A stretch of 64,000 bases of DNA from assembly GCA_000320545.1 (NCBI GenBank), contig ADNK01001797.1, positions 1 through 64,000 on the forward strand. The letters are read 5' to 3'. Numbering within the stretch: the first letter of the stretch is position 1; each line of letters starts with the position of its first letter. The stretch comes from Bigelowiella natans CCMP2755 (Eukaryota; Protista; Cercozoa). Below the pieces are notes generated by a model. It was not told where the DNA came from, did no database searches, and was given only the letters and a program-made list of their open reading frames with translations. This document shows positions 4,142 to 63,073 of this stretch, piece after piece. A program made the position numbers and the translations under genes.

Positions 4142-4805
4142 TAGTATAGTAATGTATTATTACCAAGGGAACAGCAGCAGGGAGTATGTTCCATCCAAAG
4201 GAATTAAAACTACTGCTGCTACTAGGAATTGTTCTGCCAATATGATCATACAGATATGCACATGCAACGGCTGTTGCGAGATGAATGGCTAGAATTCCCC
4301 CAATCCAAGCCTCATACACTGGTTTTCGGTCTGAAAATGACAATTACGATGATGATCATGATGCTGGTGGTGGTGGTGGTAGTTGTAATATTGATGATGA
4401 TGCACGGTAACTACTACGTAAGTGATGGAAAGCAGTAAGAATCTTGTGGTGAAGAGATTTATTATACTGTATTTAAAAAGTGCTTTCGTATCTAGTGAGC
4501 TGCAGCAGCAGCAACAACAGCATCACAACAGTTATCATCGACTTCATCATTTGGAAATGCTTTTATCACCAGCAATCAATAAATCATCATTACTACAATA
4601 TAATGAAACCCTATCCAGCTATAATAAGAAGATGCGCCCTCAGCGATTGGCTTTGATTATACCATACCGCTATGCATCAGGCGCCGTATTTTGGGGTACT
4701 TGGATAGCATTTTAGCTCGACGTCTATGATGCCACTGGAAGCAGGCTTGAAGACCCCCCTTCATGTTTTCTGGAGGCTTTTCAGCACTGAGCAATTCTAA
4801 GGGGA

Positions 4806-4845
<40 letters not shown>

Positions 4846-5745
4846 ATGCAGACACAGCCAATCTTAGCAAAACTTTTGCACGCATCACATCAACGATAAA
4901 TAGCAACAGCAACTGCTTGAGAAAACTATTCGAAAATGAATTAAAAACACCACCACCTGGATAGAGAAAATATACTTTCTCGTCATATTGTTGTTCCTTT
5001 TGCTCCGGTCCGGTTAGTTGCTCCTTTTGCTCTGATTTGGCCTGTTTCTCTGCGCTTTCACTGCTGGCCCCAAGTTTTGCCTCCTTCTCTTTGATCATCA
5101 AAGACTTTTCTTCCGATCTGCAGCTCTCTGTTCTTTCTACCATCCCCTTCTTCTTCATCATCACCGTGTCGTTTTCGACCTTACTACTTTTGCATCCCTT
5201 AGTGGAGATCTTATCATGTCGCGCTACTGGCTCCATGAGACCATACATTGCTGTACGACTCTTTACGATGCCTACGATCTCGAGCTAAGATTCGATGTAT
5301 TAATTAATATGCTTATTTGACATTACTTTCTAATTCTACTTCATAAAACACCTCTATTCTCCCGCAAGTTATTTGTGTTCGAACAATAATGTAATTATAC
5401 CCTTCGCCAGCGTCCGTCAATCGACGCCCATACGAGTGGATCATCTTCCTTCTCAACTAATTCCTAGAAATAATAAGGTGCAAATAAATGAAAACGTTTT
5501 GATTGAGATTGCGCTCCTACATCTTAAAAAGCACCCTAATGAGTCTTTCATCCTGGGATACTGCATTAAAAGAAGCTGATTTTCCTGATTGTAGTTAGCG
5601 AGATAGTTCCGTTGGCGTTTAGTGAAAGTAGTAGTATCCGGAGAGAGATAGAAGATACACACATACCTGCTGCACTTCTGAGAAAGGAGAAAGTGCTACT
5701 GAGGGCACTCTGGAGGTATGTCCCACCTTGCCGTAGATTCTCCAT
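1922..5745 (-). CDS. DEGS1: Sphingolipid delta-4 desaturase (DEGS/DES1)-like membrane fatty acid desaturase
   Basis: Hand-spliced exons give YDEKWHHRRRAKMLSKYPKIRRLM (cf. DEGS YTDQPHxxRRxEILAKYPEIKSLM) and three His boxes: LTHEISHN (~3860), LLHSQHHSNAG (~3370), RHVEHHDFPTIP...VREIAPEFYDTL (~2240-2300). Probable ATG 5743-5745 (MENLRQGG...); 5' exons join in consistent phase. Confidence 0.9.
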
Positions 5746-27158: not shown

Positions 27159-28777
27159 TAAATAATTTAGATACTACCTTTGATTTATTCTTTCCTGCTC
27201 ATCTCTGGACTCTGTAAGTTTTTCCGTTGCAATCTTCATTTCTTTTCTAGCCTCTACGATCTGTTTCTGGATACTTTTCAGTCTAAAATGAAGGAAATAG
27301 AAACATAGAACGAAATAAGGTGTTGACGTATTTCATTTTATCGTTAAACTTAAGTAGTCCTATGTGGATGTGTTAAAAATGATAGAATTTATCAAGAGAA
27401 AGACAATCTTTGGCATTCACCAGGACGTCATCTCGCATATAATCTTGAAAACAATATTGTTGTACAAATCTCATTGTAAGACACTACTCTGTTTCAGCTT
27501 GGGAAATTTGGGGTCGAAACTCCTCCATGCATTTCTTTTCATATAGAGCGGTTTTTTCTTGAAGCCTTTTCTGGTGCGCAGAACGAACCTCTGGAAATTC
27601 AAATTCGATACTGAATCTTTTAATTACACTTCCTCAAATGGTATTTGTTGCAATTTTTTACTGTTCACTATACCTTCGATATCAATTTCATGCAATTTAT
27701 TCTCTTCTTCGAGCTTCTTTTCATGTAAAGCCCGTCGTTTTTTCATTGCAGCATCCCAAAGACCCTTCATAGATTCCTAGCCAATAATTAGTTCAAATGA
27801 CATTATTGTGTTGTTATTCGTTCATAGTATCTACCAAATCTTTTGATTGTCTCATTTGAAGAGACTGGAGCGATTTTTGGTGCTTTTCTTTCAGAATATC
27901 GATCGCACTTCGATGCTTCGATTCTTCTTTATCTAGTCTGTTCTTCATTTGGTGAGTCTTAACATTTTTATTACGCCGAGTTTTCGGTTTCTGAACAGAG
28001 TCAAAATTAACCAATAGCTTGAAAGAATAGAAGAATGTTTATTACATTTTCCCTTTTCTCTGCCGAAGTAGCCGCTGGTGCTGCTGGTGCAAAGTCCGAG
28101 CTCTAAGGAAGTATTTTGAAATTCATCACGCACAAATAAGTAAATAAGTAAATGCCTGATTGCAGAACTAGATGCATGACTGGAAAAAATACCTTTGGAT
28201 TCTGGAGTTTGGTACTATAAAAAAGAGATTGTGCTGATTTGCGCACTTCTTTTGGTTTCCTTGAATTGGAATTTATTCGCCGATCCTTCTGCAAATTTAA
28301 TTATTAGTGTAGGTCATCTTCTCATTCAAGAATCTCCTCTTACTTGATATTTCTTTGTCTTCTCTCGTTGGTAGAGATCCTTATAATGCTTGTCACAAGG
28401 GTGGTTCCACTCACTCTACGCAAGATTAGATATGGAAGTATGAGAGATCGGAAGAATCATAGAAGTATGGACGTTCAAATACCTCCCCAGTTCGGAAGTT
28501 GAAGTAGTAGATATCGCCTTTTTTAGTTTGACAGGGTCTCCACCCAGGAGGGAGGGGGGCTTTAAGACCTTCTTTTGCAATCCAGAGGAGTTCCTTTCAT
28601 GGGAGATTATTATTTCTTTACATCATAAGTTGAGCAGGTAATTACCTTATCTTCGGTGACATCCATTCCCAGGAATTCACTGTAGTCCTTGATTTCATCG
28701 ATAGTAGGCTCATAATTTGGGTCATATTGTTCATCGAGAACGACTGTATCTTGGTTTTGGGACGGATTTGACGGCAT
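22193..28777 (-). CDS. CEP164: Centrosomal/distal appendage protein CEP164 homolog (N-terminal WW domain, long coiled coil)
   Basis: [39 protein letters not shown]...|[37 protein letters not shown]|[12 protein letters not shown] matches the CEP164 N-terminus. Many E/K/Q-rich coiled-coil exons follow. Probable stop TAA 22193-22195 (3' end less certain). Confidence 0.88.
25047..25131. repeat. Interrupted (AT)n tract with recurring ATAATTAAT/TATTAAT units in a CEP164 intron
   Basis: Directly visible near-palindromic AT tract. Confidence 0.9.
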
Positions 28778-29131
28778 AGCTATGAATCCAAACTCTCTTG
28801 TTCCCCCCCCCAAAAGAGTTCACCCTGTGTCACACTAGTATTACTTTCGGGTCAGGATGACTTCCTCTTCAACTGCTAGCCTACAACACTTGCAACAATA
28901 CAAGTCATATGAAGACGGTTACGATGGATTCCGTTCAAAAAATATTGCCTCTATTCGATCTCACTTGTTTACGTTTCGTTATCAGAGTGTTGGTGATGTC
29001 ATTTATACAATACGGCTTCCCGCCAGATATGACCTCACGAACTTTTAGAAAATGGCCTTTTATTCTGTGTCGCAGTCGCCTGGTTCCCTCTCCCAGCTAG
29101 CAGCCACATCCGATACGAGTGCGAGTTGGTA

Positions 29132-30813
29132 CATGATCATCTCTCGGCGTCTCCAACACATCCTTCACAACTGCTTCATTGTCATCATTTGCTAGTCACA
29201 GTCCTCACTGAAACCAGTTCGAGGCACTGCATTTTGCACGCTGCAAGTGTCTTGCAACACTTTGGAAATGTGGTTTTTCATCATTGTTTCATTGTTGTTT
29301 CATTGTCATCATTTTCAGCTCCGCGTTTCCCACTTTGCAAGTGCCATGTGATGCTTTGGAAATGCACTCGATCAACAATGAATCTTGTTTCTTTCTTGAA
29401 ATGTTTCATTGCATGGTCATTCATTCATTCAGGACGGTGTTCTGAGAACAAGAACAAGTGAACAATTGCAAGTGAGAGAGAGAGAGAGAAGGGTCATCGC
29501 AATGATTCATGTGTTCGCCTGAGGCTGCAGAATGAGTTTTTTGGGTTCTCAGATGTTTCACTTGTGAACGTCTTTCTAGGTGAACAGGAGCAATTCGAGA
29601 AAATGAAAGGTCAACCAAACTCCCTCGTGCCAAGCCACGTGCAGTCATCTCTTGTGGTGGCATGATCGAGTGCAAGCAGATGGGAAGAGATTTTTGCTTG
29701 CTCTTTTGCAAGTGAGCAGAGATGCTCCGTCACTTGTTCGTCGCATGGGTGCAACACTTTGGAAATGTCACTCACTGGATGTCAGTCGATCCCAGGATCA
29801 TCAAGTGAGCTTCTTTCTTTCCTTCTTTCTTCGTGGGTGCCAAAGAATCACCACGCAGCATGGAACTCCAGCACGACACACAATGCCATCATGCACATTG
29901 TGGAGACTCAGAGACTCAAGTCTCCACTGTGACACGTGCACGTGCGTGGTCACGTGTTCACTTGGGCATTGCGATGTTGCGATCAGATCGAGAACAAAGC
30001 CCATGCTGGCATGAGGTGTGGCGCTCAGACAATCAACAAGGACATTGACAGCATGCCAACTCCCACGCAAGCGATGAATGCACAAACCGAAGCTAGCGAA
30101 GGCGCGACAGAGGCACTTCGTTGTCCACGGAATGCGAAGTGCTTGGCTGCGCTTTGGAAACTGCGTGCACGTGCACGTGCAGCCCTTTTGGGCTGCAGAG
30201 CGTGCCAGGGTTCAGAACACACACAAGTTCTCTGGGACACAGTCCAGTGGCAGACGTGTGCTGTGTGCTTGCGCTGCGCACACATCTGTGGCGTGCGCAG
30301 CAGCATGGCAGCACACATGCTTCATGGACACAAGAATCCAAAGTGTGCATCGTGCACAACAATGTGGTCAGCACAGTGAGATTGTTGTTGTCCCACGTTG
30401 TGCAAACATCACGTGTGCGTCATGTCCCAGATGGATGCAGCTGGACAGCAACGTGTGCCATCGGTCGTGCACTGGTTGCTGCGGCTGCAGAGCTGAAATT
30501 CATTTTTGGTCTGCTCTGGCCACACTGGCCATGTCCATCATCATGTGTGCATTGTGTCACGTGTTGTGCACACACAATGCATTGCATGTGCACACATCGC
30601 GTCACGTTGTGTGACAATTCAAACATCTTCTCGTTGTGTGTGGAGCCGCGTGACGTGCTGACTCATTTGGAAGTTGAGTTTGTGGTCTGTTGTGACATGA
30701 ACACCAGAAATGTGATGCAGCTGTGCACTTTGCACTTTCTTCTGTTGCCGAGACACAGCAATGCAAACAAGCCTGTGCACAATTCATGCACATTGATCTG
30801 GAACAGAAAATTC
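29132..30813. other. TpA-free intergenic tract; probable heavily mutated repeat/transposon relic
   Basis: Only 3 TA in ~1680 bp, all within CTAG (29192, 29576, 30093). Internal 19-bp direct repeat TGCAACACTTTGGAAATGT at 29253 and 29750. No recognisable coding product. Confidence 0.7.
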
Positions 30814-31101
30814 TACACGTCTCATGACAACGACACTTCATTGAGAAATTGAAGTGAAATGCAACTGACCAGACCACTTCAAGTGTTCTATTTCAAGGTA
30901 TCTGTCCTAACATTTCTAGGAGCCGTTGAAGCACGTCAGCATCGCTCTTTTCGACTGGGAGAAATCCAAATCTATTTGTGACAGACAATGCCTCAACGCA
31001 ACTAAATACAACTTAAATTCAAATGCATGCCCTCTCAAAATTAAAAAAAAAATGAACAGGAAAAGATGATTTTGTCCGTTTTGTCAGTAAATTTTGTTAT
31101 C

Positions 31102-31979
31102 TTACGTTTGAGTCTTCTTTGCACTCATGGCCTTATGTTGGGAGACGATATTGATACCATCTTCTCTAAACGATTCAACGGATATAATTCTGACAATAGA
31201 AAAATAGATAGCCACAACATCGTAAATACCAACACTATTCAGATGACAGGATAACAACCTAAATTGATCTCTTTGGTTTCTAAACATTTCTTTTAAATTT
31301 CCAAAAATGGAAGCCAAATAATACAATCGAGAATCGGATGATTGATTGCAACAAAAAGGAATGAATTGCGTTAGAGGTGTGGTCCCTACTACATGCGGAA
31401 AGGATTCAATGCTAGATCGTATAAAAACTAACGCTTTTGACATTAATTTGCTGACCATCGTGGCTAATACCTATCTTTTGGAATTATGGTCACATTTGTC
31501 GCCTTGTCCCTCAACTTGCCAGTATTTTTACTAATATTCATGCGCAGTTTCACGAATTTCAAAGTTTCATTGTCTTTGACTTTCGCCTGTTCCTCGCCGT
31601 AGTAGACGTCATTGTCAAAGAGCCTTAAGTAAACTTTATGCACGTTGCCGCCACGATTCTTCCACTTATACACAAAGAGCGAGATCTCCTTCATTTGCTC
31701 CTCAGCCTTTTTTTCCTCTGCACGCTTTGCTATTTTTATCTTGCAACTCTGCACCTTTTCCTCTTTTACTTTAGAAAGGGCGTCTTTTATACTCTCTCTT
31801 TTCTCATTTTTGTCTCCATCATTTTCCGGGCTGTCATCCTCATGAAATACAGCAGGCTTAAAGGAAGCTTTATCGTTTACTTCATCCTCGAATTCCTGGA
31901 CCTTGAAACAATGGCGTATACAGATACAGAGAATGTTCAATTTTTGAACAGAAGTACATACCATAGTATAAATGTGTAC

Positions 31980-32045
<66 letters not shown>

Positions 32046-32246
32046 GGTACAAACAATCGACGTATAAAGTCTTGCATTTTTCTTAATTTTTGCACGTTTA
32101 GAAGTCAATTTGGGAACCTCCTCGCCATCCTGGTAGAATACAACTTTTTTTTGGGGTTCCTTTGGCTTCGAGCTCCTCATTTCGACATCGTTTCCAATAT
32201 TTGACTTAGCATGAGATTTGGACTCTTCGGAGGCACAGCATCCCAT
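31102..32246 (-). CDS. Unknown protein with N-terminal MGCC dual-acylation motif and possible PH-like C-terminal region
   Basis: ORF 31464-32246 starts MGCCASEESKS. After the (TA)/(CA) intron: charged region, then ISLFVYKWKNRGGNVHKVYLRLFDNDVYYGE (beta-strand pattern). 3' end approximate. Confidence 0.65.
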
Positions 32247-32720: not shown

Positions 32721-33597
32721 ATGGCTTCGGCCGACCCCAAGAAGATGTCACGAAGGTGGTTGTGCTTTGCATTTTTCGTGCTGCTTAATGGGTTGCCCTA
32801 CTCGCCTCACGTGGATAACCATTAACACGATTTCTAATTTTATGTTTCTGCTCCTGTAGTCGTACGATAACTAACTTTCCCTCTCAAAAATATACGTGAA
32901 TGCTTCTTATTTGCATAGGTTTCAAAAGTACCTGAAGCACATAGAGCTTACAGGGAACGTTAAACGGATAGTTGAGGAAATTTTATTTCGACTGAAGGAA
33001 AACCCACAGTTCGATATTTGGAGCTATTTCTCCCTCAGACTCTATGAGGTTGGCGTGGCGCGAGATCAAAAGAAAAAACGCAACAAGAGTCCTTCGGCAA
33101 GTGAAAAGGAAAGTAAACTAACAACAAAGGATGACGCGGAAGGACCGCACGATGGGCCGCGTGAAAATAATGAAATGGATGAGATGAAAGCTGCAAAGTC
33201 TAAACATGATATCTTCCTTAGTAAATGGGAGCTCTTGTCGACTGCATGGAAGGTTTTAGACATCAACGGTGATGGATATATATCCAGAAAGGAATTCGAA
33301 GACGGTTTAGATCGCAGTGGACTAGAATGTCTTGACAAGAAAACACGAGATGAACTATGGGAGGAAGCGGATATTAACCGTGACAATAAAATTGGATATA
33401 AAGAACTAAAGACGGTATTTAACCGATGGATGCAAGCAAAGAAACTTAAAAAGAACCATAGGAAAAAACAGAGCTCCGTCAGGGGCAGCCGGGAAAGAGT
33501 TAAACAACGAAGGGAGGAGGAGGCAGAGAAACTAAGGAAAATCAAGAAGGCTTTGGCCACGGGACATAGTGTTCAGGATGGCGTTATTGTAGAGTAG
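32721..33597 (+). CDS. EF-hand calcium-binding protein with N-terminal dimerisation/docking (RIIa/Dpy-30-like) region
   Basis: Exon 1 MASADPKKMSR joins in phase 2 to FQKYLKHIELTGNVKRIVEEILFRLKENPQFDIWSYFSLRL (D/D-like pattern). Two canonical EF loops, DINGDGYISRKE and DINRDNKIGYKE. Stop at 33597. Confidence 0.85.
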
Positions 33598-34073
33598 AAA
33601 AGTACCATACAACCAGATTATGACAAAGTTGGCTGCTGCACATGCTCTTTCTTTATGTATTCATTTATCTTCTAATGTGTTGATTTGTATCACTGTTCTA
33701 TGTCATTGTAGCGTATGTATCCTATGATTTGACATTCGATTCAGCGCAACGTCTAGACGATGGATGGTGAAAAACATAGCAGCCGTTATGGCCTTTTCGA
33801 GAATGATAGCATGATGCCATGGCATGCGATACTAAGTCAACAGACTGATCACAAAATTTTCACACAATTAATTAAATGTAATCAATTAAAACCACAGACC
33901 TAGTGACGTGAATGAAAACATACATGCACAAGAAACCAATTGAATGCCATCATGAATCGAAACGATGACACGAAACGACTAACTGAAGCTGAAAAAGAGG
34001 CACGGACCGCGCTGCACGCATCGCACCGCACGACATCGACGACAGGATGCAGGTGCTTTTAAATGCATGAAAC

Positions 34074-34137
34074 ACGTGATGGATCCATCACGTTGTGTCC
34101 ATTTGCCTAGCTCGTCCGGACGAGACAAATGGACACA

Positions 34138-34139
<2 letters not shown>
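34074..34139. repeat. Adjacent perfect palindrome and long hairpin
   Basis: ACGTGATGGATCCATCACGT (34074-34093) is a perfect 20-bp palindrome. GTTGTGTCCATTTG (34092-34105) and CAAATGGACACAAC (34126-34139) are 14-bp inverted arms around palindrome CTCGTCCGGACGAG. Confidence 0.9.
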
Positions 34140-34196
<57 letters not shown>

Positions 34197-34225
34197 TGTG
34201 TGTGAGTGTGTGTGTGAGTGTGTGT
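34140..34225. repeat. Compound (CT)n(GT)n microsatellite
   Basis: Directly visible. The same junction type occurs at ~11425-11480 and ~57890-57935. Confidence 0.95.
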
Positions 34226-35147
34226 TTGCGTCCATATCGCCCATTATATAATCGATTCAGGATGGAGCATCCTTTTCATACTTCGACAATTGACAGACAT
34301 CAACATATTGAAAAAGCTTTGTGCCTTCTAAGCTGCTTTGCATGGTCACATTGGGACAACCATTGAAAAATGATAGACATGCAATGTGATATGTGTAATA
34401 TGTACCCTATTGCTGTGTAGGTCACAAAAGATTTCATCACTTCATTGTTGCATCCGTCTCACAAGCTGTGCAGCAGATGCAATGAACACAGCAACATGAT
34501 GCGCACATTGCATGTCCATCACAACAGCTAGACGCAGCAATGTGATGTGCACATCGTGTGCATACGTACACATCACATTGCATGTCCATGCATCATAGAT
34601 GATCTCTTTTCTTTATTTCAAACAAGATCCATTGTCAACATCTGCGCATTCCACGATGTGAAATCATGGGCATGCAAGCTAGCAAGCATATTTCCAAGTC
34701 TCTAGTTCATTGTGTTCACATGTGCCACAGTGCAAAACAAAGCATTGCACACATGAACATGTTTGCTAGAGCTTGCAACACAAACCTTCATTGTATTGCT
34801 CGCATCTCTCCTCGCATTGTGAGAGCAGTCGCGCATTTTTTTTTGCGCAGCATTGCTTTTGTGTGCAATAACAACAACGCGGAACACACACACCCAGAGC
34901 ACAATAATGCAAATATCTCATCATTAATCTGGTCATAGAACTACTCAATAGAGTCTCAAGAAGAATAAAACTTATTAATAATCAAACTAAGAGTTGCAAC
35001 ACTATATAGATTATTATCAATGCAGCCGAGCATCAATTGTGTGACATGAATTAAAAATAATGTAAAGTATCTTCCTTTATTTCTACTTACTATGACCGTA
35101 CCATCTTGTCTTATGCTCTATTATTGTCTAATTTTGTCGCCAAATTT

Positions 35148-60660: not shown

Positions 60661-61380
60661 GCACACGCCATTCTGCGTCGCGGAGCTAGCAGCGCCCTTG
60701 CGAGCACAAGCGAAGCAGAACAAACAGCATCATTGCACGTGCACGTACATAGCATTCTAGCATCGCATGTTGTGAGCTAGCTTGCTTGCATTGGTACACG
60801 TAGCAGCACAAGCACATGCACAATCGATGCACGAAAGCTGAAAACCACGGCATGTCTCATTCAGTGATGCATCATGATGCACATTGTCTCATGACAATGT
60901 CTTGTGACTAGCCACATCTCATGGCCTAGTGCCCATGATGGTGCGATCTAGCGATGCCGCCGCGTATGGCTGCATGCAACGTATCGTACGTCAAGTGCGT
61001 GACAACCGAAATTCAGATGATGACTGCCAGACTACGCACGTTGCTGATGATCTAGCAAACTTGGCATGACTAGATCTAGAGATGAGGAGTTGCATGCGCG
61101 ATGTTTCAGTCTCTGCTGCGCTGGCTAGCTGGGGCACATGTTGCAAGTCCTGCAATGACAGACATCGCCACCAATCACCAATGCATGAATGGATGCGATC
61201 GCATCGTTGTCACAACGTCACAGATCATTGACTTCGAAGATCTGGATGAACGACGTGCGCCATTCTAGCTGACACTATTTTCAAATCTCAAAATGTGATG
61301 CACATTGTTTTTCACATGTGAAAATTAAACGATGAACTTGCTCATAAACGCCTGCGAACGCTAGAGCTGCACGTGCAACG
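60661..61380. other. TpA-depleted, CTAG-enriched convergent spacer
   Basis: Hand count: 23 TA in 720 bp, of which 12 are in CTAG. Confidence 0.75.
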
Positions 61381-61485: not shown

Positions 61486-63073
61486 TCAGTTCTTATTCAC
61501 CCTCGTGGCAAACAGCACATCGAAGGGATCGAAGCTTTCCTCCCCTGTTCCATTTCCATTGTTGCTATTTGTATTGCTACCAGGAAAACCACCATTTCCT
61601 CCGTCATTGTTTCTGGAAGTATTAGCGGGCATGGTGATGCTCGCAGCTGTACTAGTCTCTACCCTATTGTTACCCGTCATATTCCTCCCGTTTGTGCTGA
61701 TACTACTACCTCCAAGGCCACCACGGCTGCTGCTACTTTGCTGTTGATCAGCAGGAGTCGAGAAGATGCCGAAGAGGTCTGGCATTGCTTGAGTAGCTGC
61801 TGCACCAGTTGTACTAGTCCCTCTACTGTTACAGGTGCTAGTGCTACCGCGAGATGAAGTGGGATTCGGTATAATGTCTTTTGTATCCGTCCTCCTGTGC
61901 GGCTGTTTTCTTCCCTTTCTATTATCGCTAGTTGTATCGATCGATGTCGTTACGCTTTTGCCCACTGTCATCCCCCCACTAGGATTAGATTGCAAGAATG
62001 GATTCTCGCTGAGATCGATCCCTAGAAACGGATTCAGCCCTGGTTGCTGCTGCAGCTGCTTTTGCTGTTGCTTGGATGATAAGGAAGATGAGGACGACGA
62101 TGATGACGTGGTGGACTCATGCCGGTGTTGGCGTTGATGCTTAAAATCTGAAATCGTTCCCGGCATGACCCTCTTATTTGGGAGGACCTTCTTTCCTACT
62201 TGTTGTTGCCTCTGTTGCGCTTGGTGCTGCACCCGTCGAGTGCCTGCCTTGCTACTTTCATTCCCCGCGGAAGTGTTGGCGGCTAATGGTGCTTGAAAGG
62301 AGGAAGAGGACGAGGAGGGGGAGGACGGGCCGAAAGGGTCAAAGGCTCTATCGAACGAGCTCATTTTCAAAATTTGGGGTGGTTGCGGCGGTGGGTTCTT
62401 CCTCCTCGCAGGATCTGGACGGCGATTGGCTGGCACAGCGGGGGGGGGGGCTGAAGAAGTGACTACAACAGGGGGGTACTTTTTGCTCTCCAAAGGCTCT
62501 AGTCGACTGTGGATGACTGCGAAGGGCGGTATGATCAAGCCTTTTCCATCAATTAACGTTTGCGTGCGGATGTTGCTTATCGATTGCTCTTTCAAGGGAT
62601 AGATTACACGACCGCCTCCCCTTCCCTGTTGTATCCCTTTCCTTTCGCCGCCTCTCGCTGCGGTCACCCCGCCTCCCTCGGCTTTAGGGGCTGACTTGAG
62701 GAGCCATGGGTCGATGGGGGGTGCCATGTAAATCTTGGATGCATCCTCCACGAAACGGTATCGGCGAAGTCTCTTGATGGAGAAGACATTGGAGGAGTAC
62801 CTATAAGCACGTTCGGCAAGCTCTCTTACTAGCCCTTGATATGTCTGGTTCGAATGACGGTACGAGCTCTTCAGCTCTTGTAGCAGCTCATGCTGCTCCA
62901 TTGCGTGGAATAGAATGATATCACCTGTTTGATGGTGACGTGTCAGTCTTAATTACAGTGTGCATCCATTTTCCAATGGTCGGTCTCCGGACCCCCCTCT
63001 CCCTTTTCCATCTCGGATTAGGCAACTGATTTGGAAGAGTAATCTTCTTTCCCTCTCCCCGACCCCAAATGTT

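Follow-up and report, generated by a model that had tools for sequence, protein, structure and literature searches.

What removes a single dinucleotide almost completely from a short stretch of a nuclear genome? We met this question in Bigelowiella natans, in a 64-kb stretch of DNA (the window, meaning the whole stretch that was analysed) in which a segment of about 1.7 kb is nearly free of TA. The original prediction for this segment had proposed a hypermutation system that turns TA into TG or CA. Below, we describe the segment and its setting, weigh selection, artefact and mutation as its cause, and compare it with hypermutation and editing systems that are already known.

TA is erased from a sharply bounded intergenic tract

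The origin of the window could be fixed through an EF-hand ORF at 32896-33597. This ORF is 100% identical to an MMETSP transcript, and the 90%-identity cluster of that transcript includes EukProt EP00466 Bigelowiella_natans, corresponding to JGI Bigna1 76654 (fgenesh1_pg.42_). This places the window in the nuclear genome of B. natans, and the name of the gene model points to scaffold 42. The nearest named relative of the EF-hand protein comes from the chlorarachniophyte Amorphochlora. ORFs in the window are broken up, as in an intron-bearing genome.

The TA-poor tract is intergenic and lies between two minus-strand genes that are predicted from ORFs:

28610-28813, minus strand: putative first coding exon of the left gene (MPSNPSQ..., ATG near 28777), from the ORF list
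29132-30885, no strand assigned: TpA-erased tract, intergenic, GC 49%, 4 TA among 416 TA/CA/TG sites
31464-32246, minus strand: right gene (starts MGCCAS..., stop at 31464, microsatellite-bearing intron), from the ORF list

The left gene appears to continue as coiled-coil ORFs to about 24281, as judged from ORFs only, and its putative start near 28777 is located ~350 bp from the tract, which lies upstream of it. On the other side, the tract lies ~580 bp downstream of the stop of the right gene at 31464. Neither the left-hand nor the right-hand gene has a match in Pfam.

Within 29132-30813 (1682 bp; A 402, C 404, G 422, T 454), base composition predicts 108.5 TA, of which 3 are present (o/e 0.03). 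The original prediction had counted 3 where roughly 100 were expected, and our recount is identical. Its statements that TG and CA are over-represented and that CG is retained also hold: CA occurs 200 times (o/e 2.07), TG 196 times (o/e 1.72) and CG 66 times (o/e 0.65, compared with 0.80 for the whole 64-kb window). CC and GG reach an o/e of 0.48 and 0.60, respectively, and the GC content is 49% as against ~40% in both flanks.

Of all TA-free runs in the window, the three longest (384, 517 and 720 bp) adjoin each other within the tract, while the next-longest run in the 64 kb measures 192 bp. For every other dinucleotide, no gap in the window exceeds 360 bp. A maximal-segment scan over TA, CA and TG sites returned 29132-30885 as the best TA-poor segment, with TA at 4 of 416 sites; against the background TA fraction of 0.324, this corresponds to a binomial P of 1.6e-63. 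To the left, TA sites are spaced normally as far as 29130, and normal spacing resumes at 30889 on the right; both borders are sharp within a few tens of bases. The sharp edges that had been predicted are thus real, although the right one is found ~70 bp past the predicted 30813, at 30885.

The tract carries no recognisable gene, RNA or mobile element

Open frames run along both strands of the tract, which hold 9-22 stops per frame, nearly all of them TGA. The longest open run spans 239 codons, compared with 156 ± 38 in first-order simulations, and 4% of the simulations reached this length. When ten tract ORFs were searched against Pfam and PHROGs, only sub-threshold matches were obtained, the best being zf-DPOE with 17 bits (cut-off 21; E = 0.007). 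The longest tract ORF (243 aa) had no matches among 1.84 billion representative proteins, and an exact look-up of a 178-aa tract ORF in public assemblies found nothing. We therefore rejected a protein-coding gene, as no frame is open beyond chance and neither a homologue nor a domain was found. Lying between two predicted genes and lacking a coding signal, the tract is non-genic, as had been supposed. Because TAA and TAG have vanished from both strands, long frames without coding meaning stay open, and these are rich in Cys, His and Val. The stack of pseudo-ORFs that the original prediction had traced to this loss is thus real: it occupies both strands, its stops are nearly all TGA and it has no homologues.

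RNA searches were carried out across the entire 64-kb window. Rfam covariance models at gathering score gave no match, and a tRNA search found none. A second copy of the tract was not detected above chance in the window, either with purine/pyrimidine-coded 28-mers or with a transition-tolerant alignment to the TA-poor patches. Across the tract edges, terminal inverted repeats, LTRs and direct repeats or target-site duplications did not exceed those in shuffles. Degenerate patterns in which CA was read as YA and TG as TR revealed no unedited relatives in viral or metagenome contigs. Taken together, Pfam, PHROGs, the protein search, the viral contigs and the terminal repeats yielded no viral or transposon signature in the tract.

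Composition and internal repeats support transitions at TpA

We next compared the tract with ordinary DNA that had been converted in silico. Chunks of ordinary DNA from the window (34 of 1754 bp each) had every TA changed at random to CA or TG, with CTAG spared. The converted chunks had a GC content of 0.48 ± 0.02 (tract, 0.49) and a TA o/e of 0.04 ± 0.03 (tract, 0.03), and 16 of 16 dinucleotide ratios came to lie within ~2.5 sd of the tract. The conversion also produced most of the drop in CC, GG and CG seen in the tract, with CC and GG below the simple model at z = -2.5 and -1.5. The composition of the tract is close to that of host-like DNA (~41% GC) plus complete TA conversion, and after reversal of the conversion it does not differ from that of the host. 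When one third of the replacements were modelled as transversions, the fit deteriorated, with a predicted CA+TG of 1.56 where 1.89 is observed.

CA and TG are balanced in the tract (209 and 203), and their order along it shows no runs (runs test, z = +0.7). The mutations were thus many, single-site events on either strand. Strand-processive editing was rejected on account of the negative runs test.

A further line of evidence is provided by short repeats within the tract:

29245-29272, plus strand: copy 1 of a four-copy motif of ~25-30 nt (..GCAAGTG..CTTTGGAAA..), from repeat search and alignment
29276-29310, plus strand: 11-bp tandem repeat TTTCATTGTTG, ~3 units, from TRF and the collapse test
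30539-30600, no strand assigned: pyrimidine-purine run CATCATGTGTGCAT..TGTGCACACAC.., which collapses to a TA/TAT-type simple repeat

The other copies of the four-copy motif start at 29339, 29742 and 30137, and all four share the same orientation. Its core, RCTTTGGAAAYR, matches three of the four copies and nothing else in the window, with 0.1 chance matches expected. Tandem units of ~400 bp were considered and rejected, as the short motif alone aligns. Compared over 20 nt (29253 against 29347), motif copies 1 and 2 show six base differences, which amount to three CA<->TG swaps. Neighbouring units of the tandem repeat, compared over a 24-nt overlap (29276 against 29287), show five, again of the CA/TG kind. 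Reading CA and TG as TA removes every difference within both pairs. Over the tract as a whole, collapsing CA and TG to TA yielded a gain of 14 repeated 12-mers, low-complexity words excluded, compared with 3.0 ± 2.7 in simulations (z = 4.0); this test is only moderately significant, as 1 of 150 simulations beat the observed gain. The control collapse of AC and GT to AT gave no gain (z = -0.5).

The run at 30539-30600 looks like a fossil (TA)n-like microsatellite, a type of repeat that is common in this genome, and intact (TA)n arrays are found close by, for example at 31982-32000 (TRF). Runs of the (CGTGCA)n type at 29932-29950 and 30162-30181 hold CG units. As such units cannot be produced by single TA->CA/TG hits on (TA)n, the fossil reading suits 30539-30600 better.

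These observations support a mutational origin of the tract by transitions at TpA only, with the direction of change deduced from the present-day repeats and composition rather than from an ancestral sequence. Judged in the same way, from the tract and not from its ancestor, the replacements are TA->CA/TG transitions on both strands. The A->G transition at TpA on both strands that the original prediction had put forward is hence supported by three features, namely the conversion fit, the CA<->TG swaps between repeats and the strand balance.

The signature corresponds to a hypermutation process reported for B. natans

A mutation-accumulation experiment on B. natans was described recently by Mettrop et al. 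(2026, bioRxiv 10.64898/2026.01.13.699255; April 2026 version, not peer reviewed). In this work, 231 of 302 nuclear point mutations fell into two viral inserts, an NCLDV insert of 186 kb on scaffold 10 and a virophage insert of 25 kb on scaffold 146. The mutation rate in both inserts was ~1000x baseline, and only some lines were affected. All but one of the 231 viral-insert mutations (230) were A->G or T->C, located at TpA according to the authors. In our own tally of their Table S2, 226 of the 230 are at TpA, while four, all of them T->C, are listed with an ATG or ATT context. [quoted passage not shown] As its role they suggest a defence against foreign DNA, with the ADAT2-like protein Bn78255 as a possible DNA adenine deaminase.

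The original prediction knew of no described natural genomic process of this kind. This is out of date, as the bioRxiv study describes it in B. natans itself. A process that converts TA to TG or CA is already reported for this species, in agreement with the prediction as to direction, dinucleotide, symmetry between the strands and family of deaminase. The proposed system is correct in substance, yet not new.

The tract resembles the regions of Mettrop et al. in many respects: the species is the same, TpA is lost and CpA and TpG are gained, both strands are affected, the changes are transitions only and the GC content is raised. Like most of their clusters, the tract has no annotation. Furthermore, the mutation-accumulation lines carry scattered single events, matching the single-site pattern of the tract. 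Differences are seen in scale and in target. The tract is 1.75 kb long and saturated, with a TA o/e of 0.03, whereas the NCLDV insert has a TA o/e of 0.45. The process of Mettrop et al. is tied to foreign DNA, while the tract shows no viral or transposon signature. Moreover, mutation was observed by these authors as it occurred at other loci, whereas the tract is known from its sequence only.

The published clusters were defined by a Rho of TpA <= 0.43 and a Rho of CpA+TpG >= 1.52 in three consecutive 1-kb windows. With values of 0.03 and ~1.9, the tract lies well within both Rho thresholds, but only 1-2 consecutive 1-kb windows qualify at every grid offset, which leaves it outside the three-window rule. 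Short islands thus escape this rule, and the published count probably understates the amount of affected DNA. In the portion of the low-TA gene lists available to us, the only scaffold-42 models are 76602, 76673 and 62810, none of which is next to 76654 in numbering. The accessible part of Table S2 lists one scaffold_42 mutation, an ordinary C->T.

Most surviving TA sites lie in CTAG

The few TA that persist in the tract share their context. Those in its interior, each identified by direct reading of the context and with no strand assigned, are the following:

29192-29195: surviving TA, CTAG context
29576-29579: surviving TA, CTAG context
30093-30096: surviving TA, CTAG context

Thus, 3 of 3 internal survivors are CTAG; a fourth TA, at the border, is CTAC. 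In the remainder of the 64-kb window, CTAG accounts for 3.7% of TA contexts. From this background, ~4.6 CTAG are expected in the tract and 3 are left, while of ~117 other TA expected only 1 is left. When the survivors of the tract were pooled with those of two further TA-poor islands (34423-34903 and 61083-61320; microsatellite patches left out), CTAG accounted for 9 of 18.

To see how this compares with mutations caught in the act, we tallied by hand the 3' neighbour of the edited A in the 226 TpA events of Table S2 (Mettrop et al., bioRxiv 10.64898/2026.01.13.699255) and obtained A 71, C 56, G 23 and T 76. A 3' G is thus present in 10% of the events, compared with 20% of the TA contexts in the 64-kb window. 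A 3' G is under-used ~twofold or more in the Table S2 events, where the background is that of the 64-kb window and not of the mutated regions. By strand, the 3'-G events are uneven in this hand tally, with 4 A->G at TAG and 19 T->C at CTA.

The palindrome CTAG presents a 3' G on either strand, and its survival fits the under-use of this context. The survival looks greater than a twofold bias would yield, on small numbers. An absolute rule by which TA followed by G is never edited was rejected, as 23 events in Table S2 carry a 3' G and CCA/TGG is raised in the tract. We therefore keep the avoidance of a 3' G as a bias and not as an absolute rule. The main text of the bioRxiv study mentions neither a context wider than TpA nor the sparing of CTAG.

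The tract is very probably a saturated product of this process

In light of these data, we consider it very probable that the tract is B. natans intergenic DNA saturated by the TpA-specific hypermutation of this species, and that the same process has acted at this locus. At each TpA, the A of the top or of the bottom strand would be altered by a transition, giving TpG or CpA. The hits would be independent, affect single sites on either strand, stay confined to a sharply bounded segment and go on until only the TA within the palindrome CTAG remain. The chemistry would be adenine deamination by the candidate ADAT2-like enzyme.

This last step has a competitor, since the thymine of TpA might be the target instead. 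If it were oxidised or otherwise modified, it could mispair with G and give rise to T->C. TpA is self-complementary, so A->G and T->C on opposite strands look the same in the sequence, and the context bias fits either reading, as a C before the T equals a G after the A. The ADAT2-like adenine deaminase, however, offers a plausible candidate for the adenine route (Mettrop et al.), and we regard the thymine route as unlikely.

Editing might also have preceded integration. Episomal viral DNA or cDNA would then have been edited first and inserted afterwards, with nothing targeted in place. The very sharp edges would follow automatically from the insertion of pre-edited DNA, and the process is linked to viral DNA (Mettrop et al.). 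In the same study, however, long-integrated single-copy DNA mutates in place. Moreover, neither a target-site duplication nor a terminal repeat nor viral homology was found at the tract, and its reverted composition cannot be told apart from that of the host. The tract may stem from a decayed non-coding foreign fragment, while its editing before integration appears rather improbable to us.

Selection against TA would require the tract to be a non-coding element with a function, for instance as promoter or enhancer of the left gene, as structural DNA or as ncRNA. In its favour are the position of the tract ~350 bp upstream of a probable gene start and the four-copy motif that is absent elsewhere in the window. 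Yet no known constraint strips one dinucleotide from 1.75 kb while all else stays at the values of background after conversion, and the replacement has taken place by transitions only. Selection also does not predict that one repeat copy carries CA and the other TG at the same site. As Rfam gave no match and a mutational process with exactly this signature was observed directly in B. natans (Mettrop et al.), selection is very improbable. An artefact of sequencing or assembly, as might arise if a modified base were misread at TpA, had been raised by the original prediction as a formal possibility. It is scarcely credible, as it would neither spare CTAG nor give balanced CA/TG within repeat copies. 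In addition, when Mettrop et al. mapped Illumina reads of the parental line to this reference, 90% of the genome was callable, and intergenic SNPs outside the viral region amounted to only 1.5e-4 per base.

With saturation by the B. natans TpA process as the preferred reading, the tract contributes several details. Among eukaryotes, programmed A:T->G:C hypermutation of DNA at a single dinucleotide is highly unusual, and the original prediction recognised it from the letters alone. The tract is an example of its end state, in which complete action, sharpness of the borders and strand balance can be followed at the grain of single sites. What it adds is the saturated end state, the sharp borders, the fit to pure conversion, the sparing of CTAG together with a 3'-G bias, and a target in which no foreign signature was found. 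It suggests that targets need not look viral, and its details make the search for enzyme and targeting signal a narrower one. As a tentative extension, the process might reach beyond recognisably foreign DNA and erase TA in short, sharply bounded, host-like intergenic segments, leaving CTAG essentially untouched to a degree that exceeds the 3'-G bias; we hold this to be possible, though the less probable outcome. If true, it would call for an agent that reads a duplex tetranucleotide or for a protective modification at CTAG, and for a targeting signal that marks segments with borders at base-pair scale.

Relation to other hypermutation and editing systems

Repeat-induced point mutation (RIP) of fungi resembles the changes in the tract in that it is dinucleotide-specific, consists of transitions only, affects defined segments and is read as a genome defence. 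However, RIP converts CpA to TpA (C->T) and lowers GC, while in the tract TpA is destroyed and GC is raised. RIP also targets duplicated DNA, whereas the tract has no duplicate in the window. The RIP indices of the tract point in the opposite direction, with TpA/ApT at 3/102 = 0.03 and (CpA+TpG)/(ApC+GpT) at 396/235 = 1.69, bearing out the earlier view that RIP runs the other way.

ADAR, APOBEC and AID of animals likewise generate clustered transitions of the deaminase type, directed at nucleic acids of viruses or repeats. A further resemblance is the preference of ADAR for a 5' U (bioRxiv 10.64898/2026.01.13.699255). The substrate of ADAR, however, is RNA, and a 3' G is favoured. The tract, in contrast, is genomic DNA in which both strands were changed equally and a 3' G is disfavoured. 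APOBEC and AID differ from the process seen in the tract as they alter C and not A or T.

The natural target of the tRNA adenosine deaminases TadA and ADAT2-ADAT3 is A34, which is preceded by U33. This U33-A34 step matches the T-A requirement of the TpA process. The 64-kb window itself encodes no such enzyme. Half of the eukaryotic A34 tRNAs have a G at position 35, which suggests, if weakly, that plain ADAT2/3 specificity does not predict the under-use of a 3' G.

Further TA-poor patches in the window and a related locus

We also inspected a locus in Amorphochlora amoebiformis that carries the EF-hand orthologue (GCA_054601695.1, BAAHQB010000021.1, 364413-386114). It is not syntenic with the window, has a GC content of 29% and a TA o/e of 1.6, and its longest TA gap measures 165 bp. 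TA is scarce in one 200-bp window only, where CA is not enriched. In this small sample, there is no sign of the TpA process.

Two patches of the B. natans window, 33923-34234 and 4727-4892, are largely (CT)n/(TG)n microsatellites and call for caution before they are taken as hypermutation islands; their similarity to each other (z = 13) reflects a common (TG)n array only. At 61486-62901, on the minus strand, an ATG-started ORF of 471 aa lies in a GC-rich, moderately TA-poor stretch. Pfam, the protein search and an exact look-up returned nothing for it, and it may be an orphan gene or a low-TA pseudo-ORF.

Two islands of TA depletion were found besides the tract. The smaller one, the third in the window, spans 61083-61320 and has TA at 3 of 58 sites; the context of these survivors is CTAG twice and CTAT once. 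Alignment to the main tract revealed no similarity, even with transitions allowed. The second island, at 34423-34903, lies in the interval that separates the EF-hand gene from the next minus-strand ORF and retains TA at 11 of 136 TA/CA/TG sites (P = 1.5e-11). Four of these 11 surviving TA are CTAG, and the depletion at this site looks partial rather than saturated.
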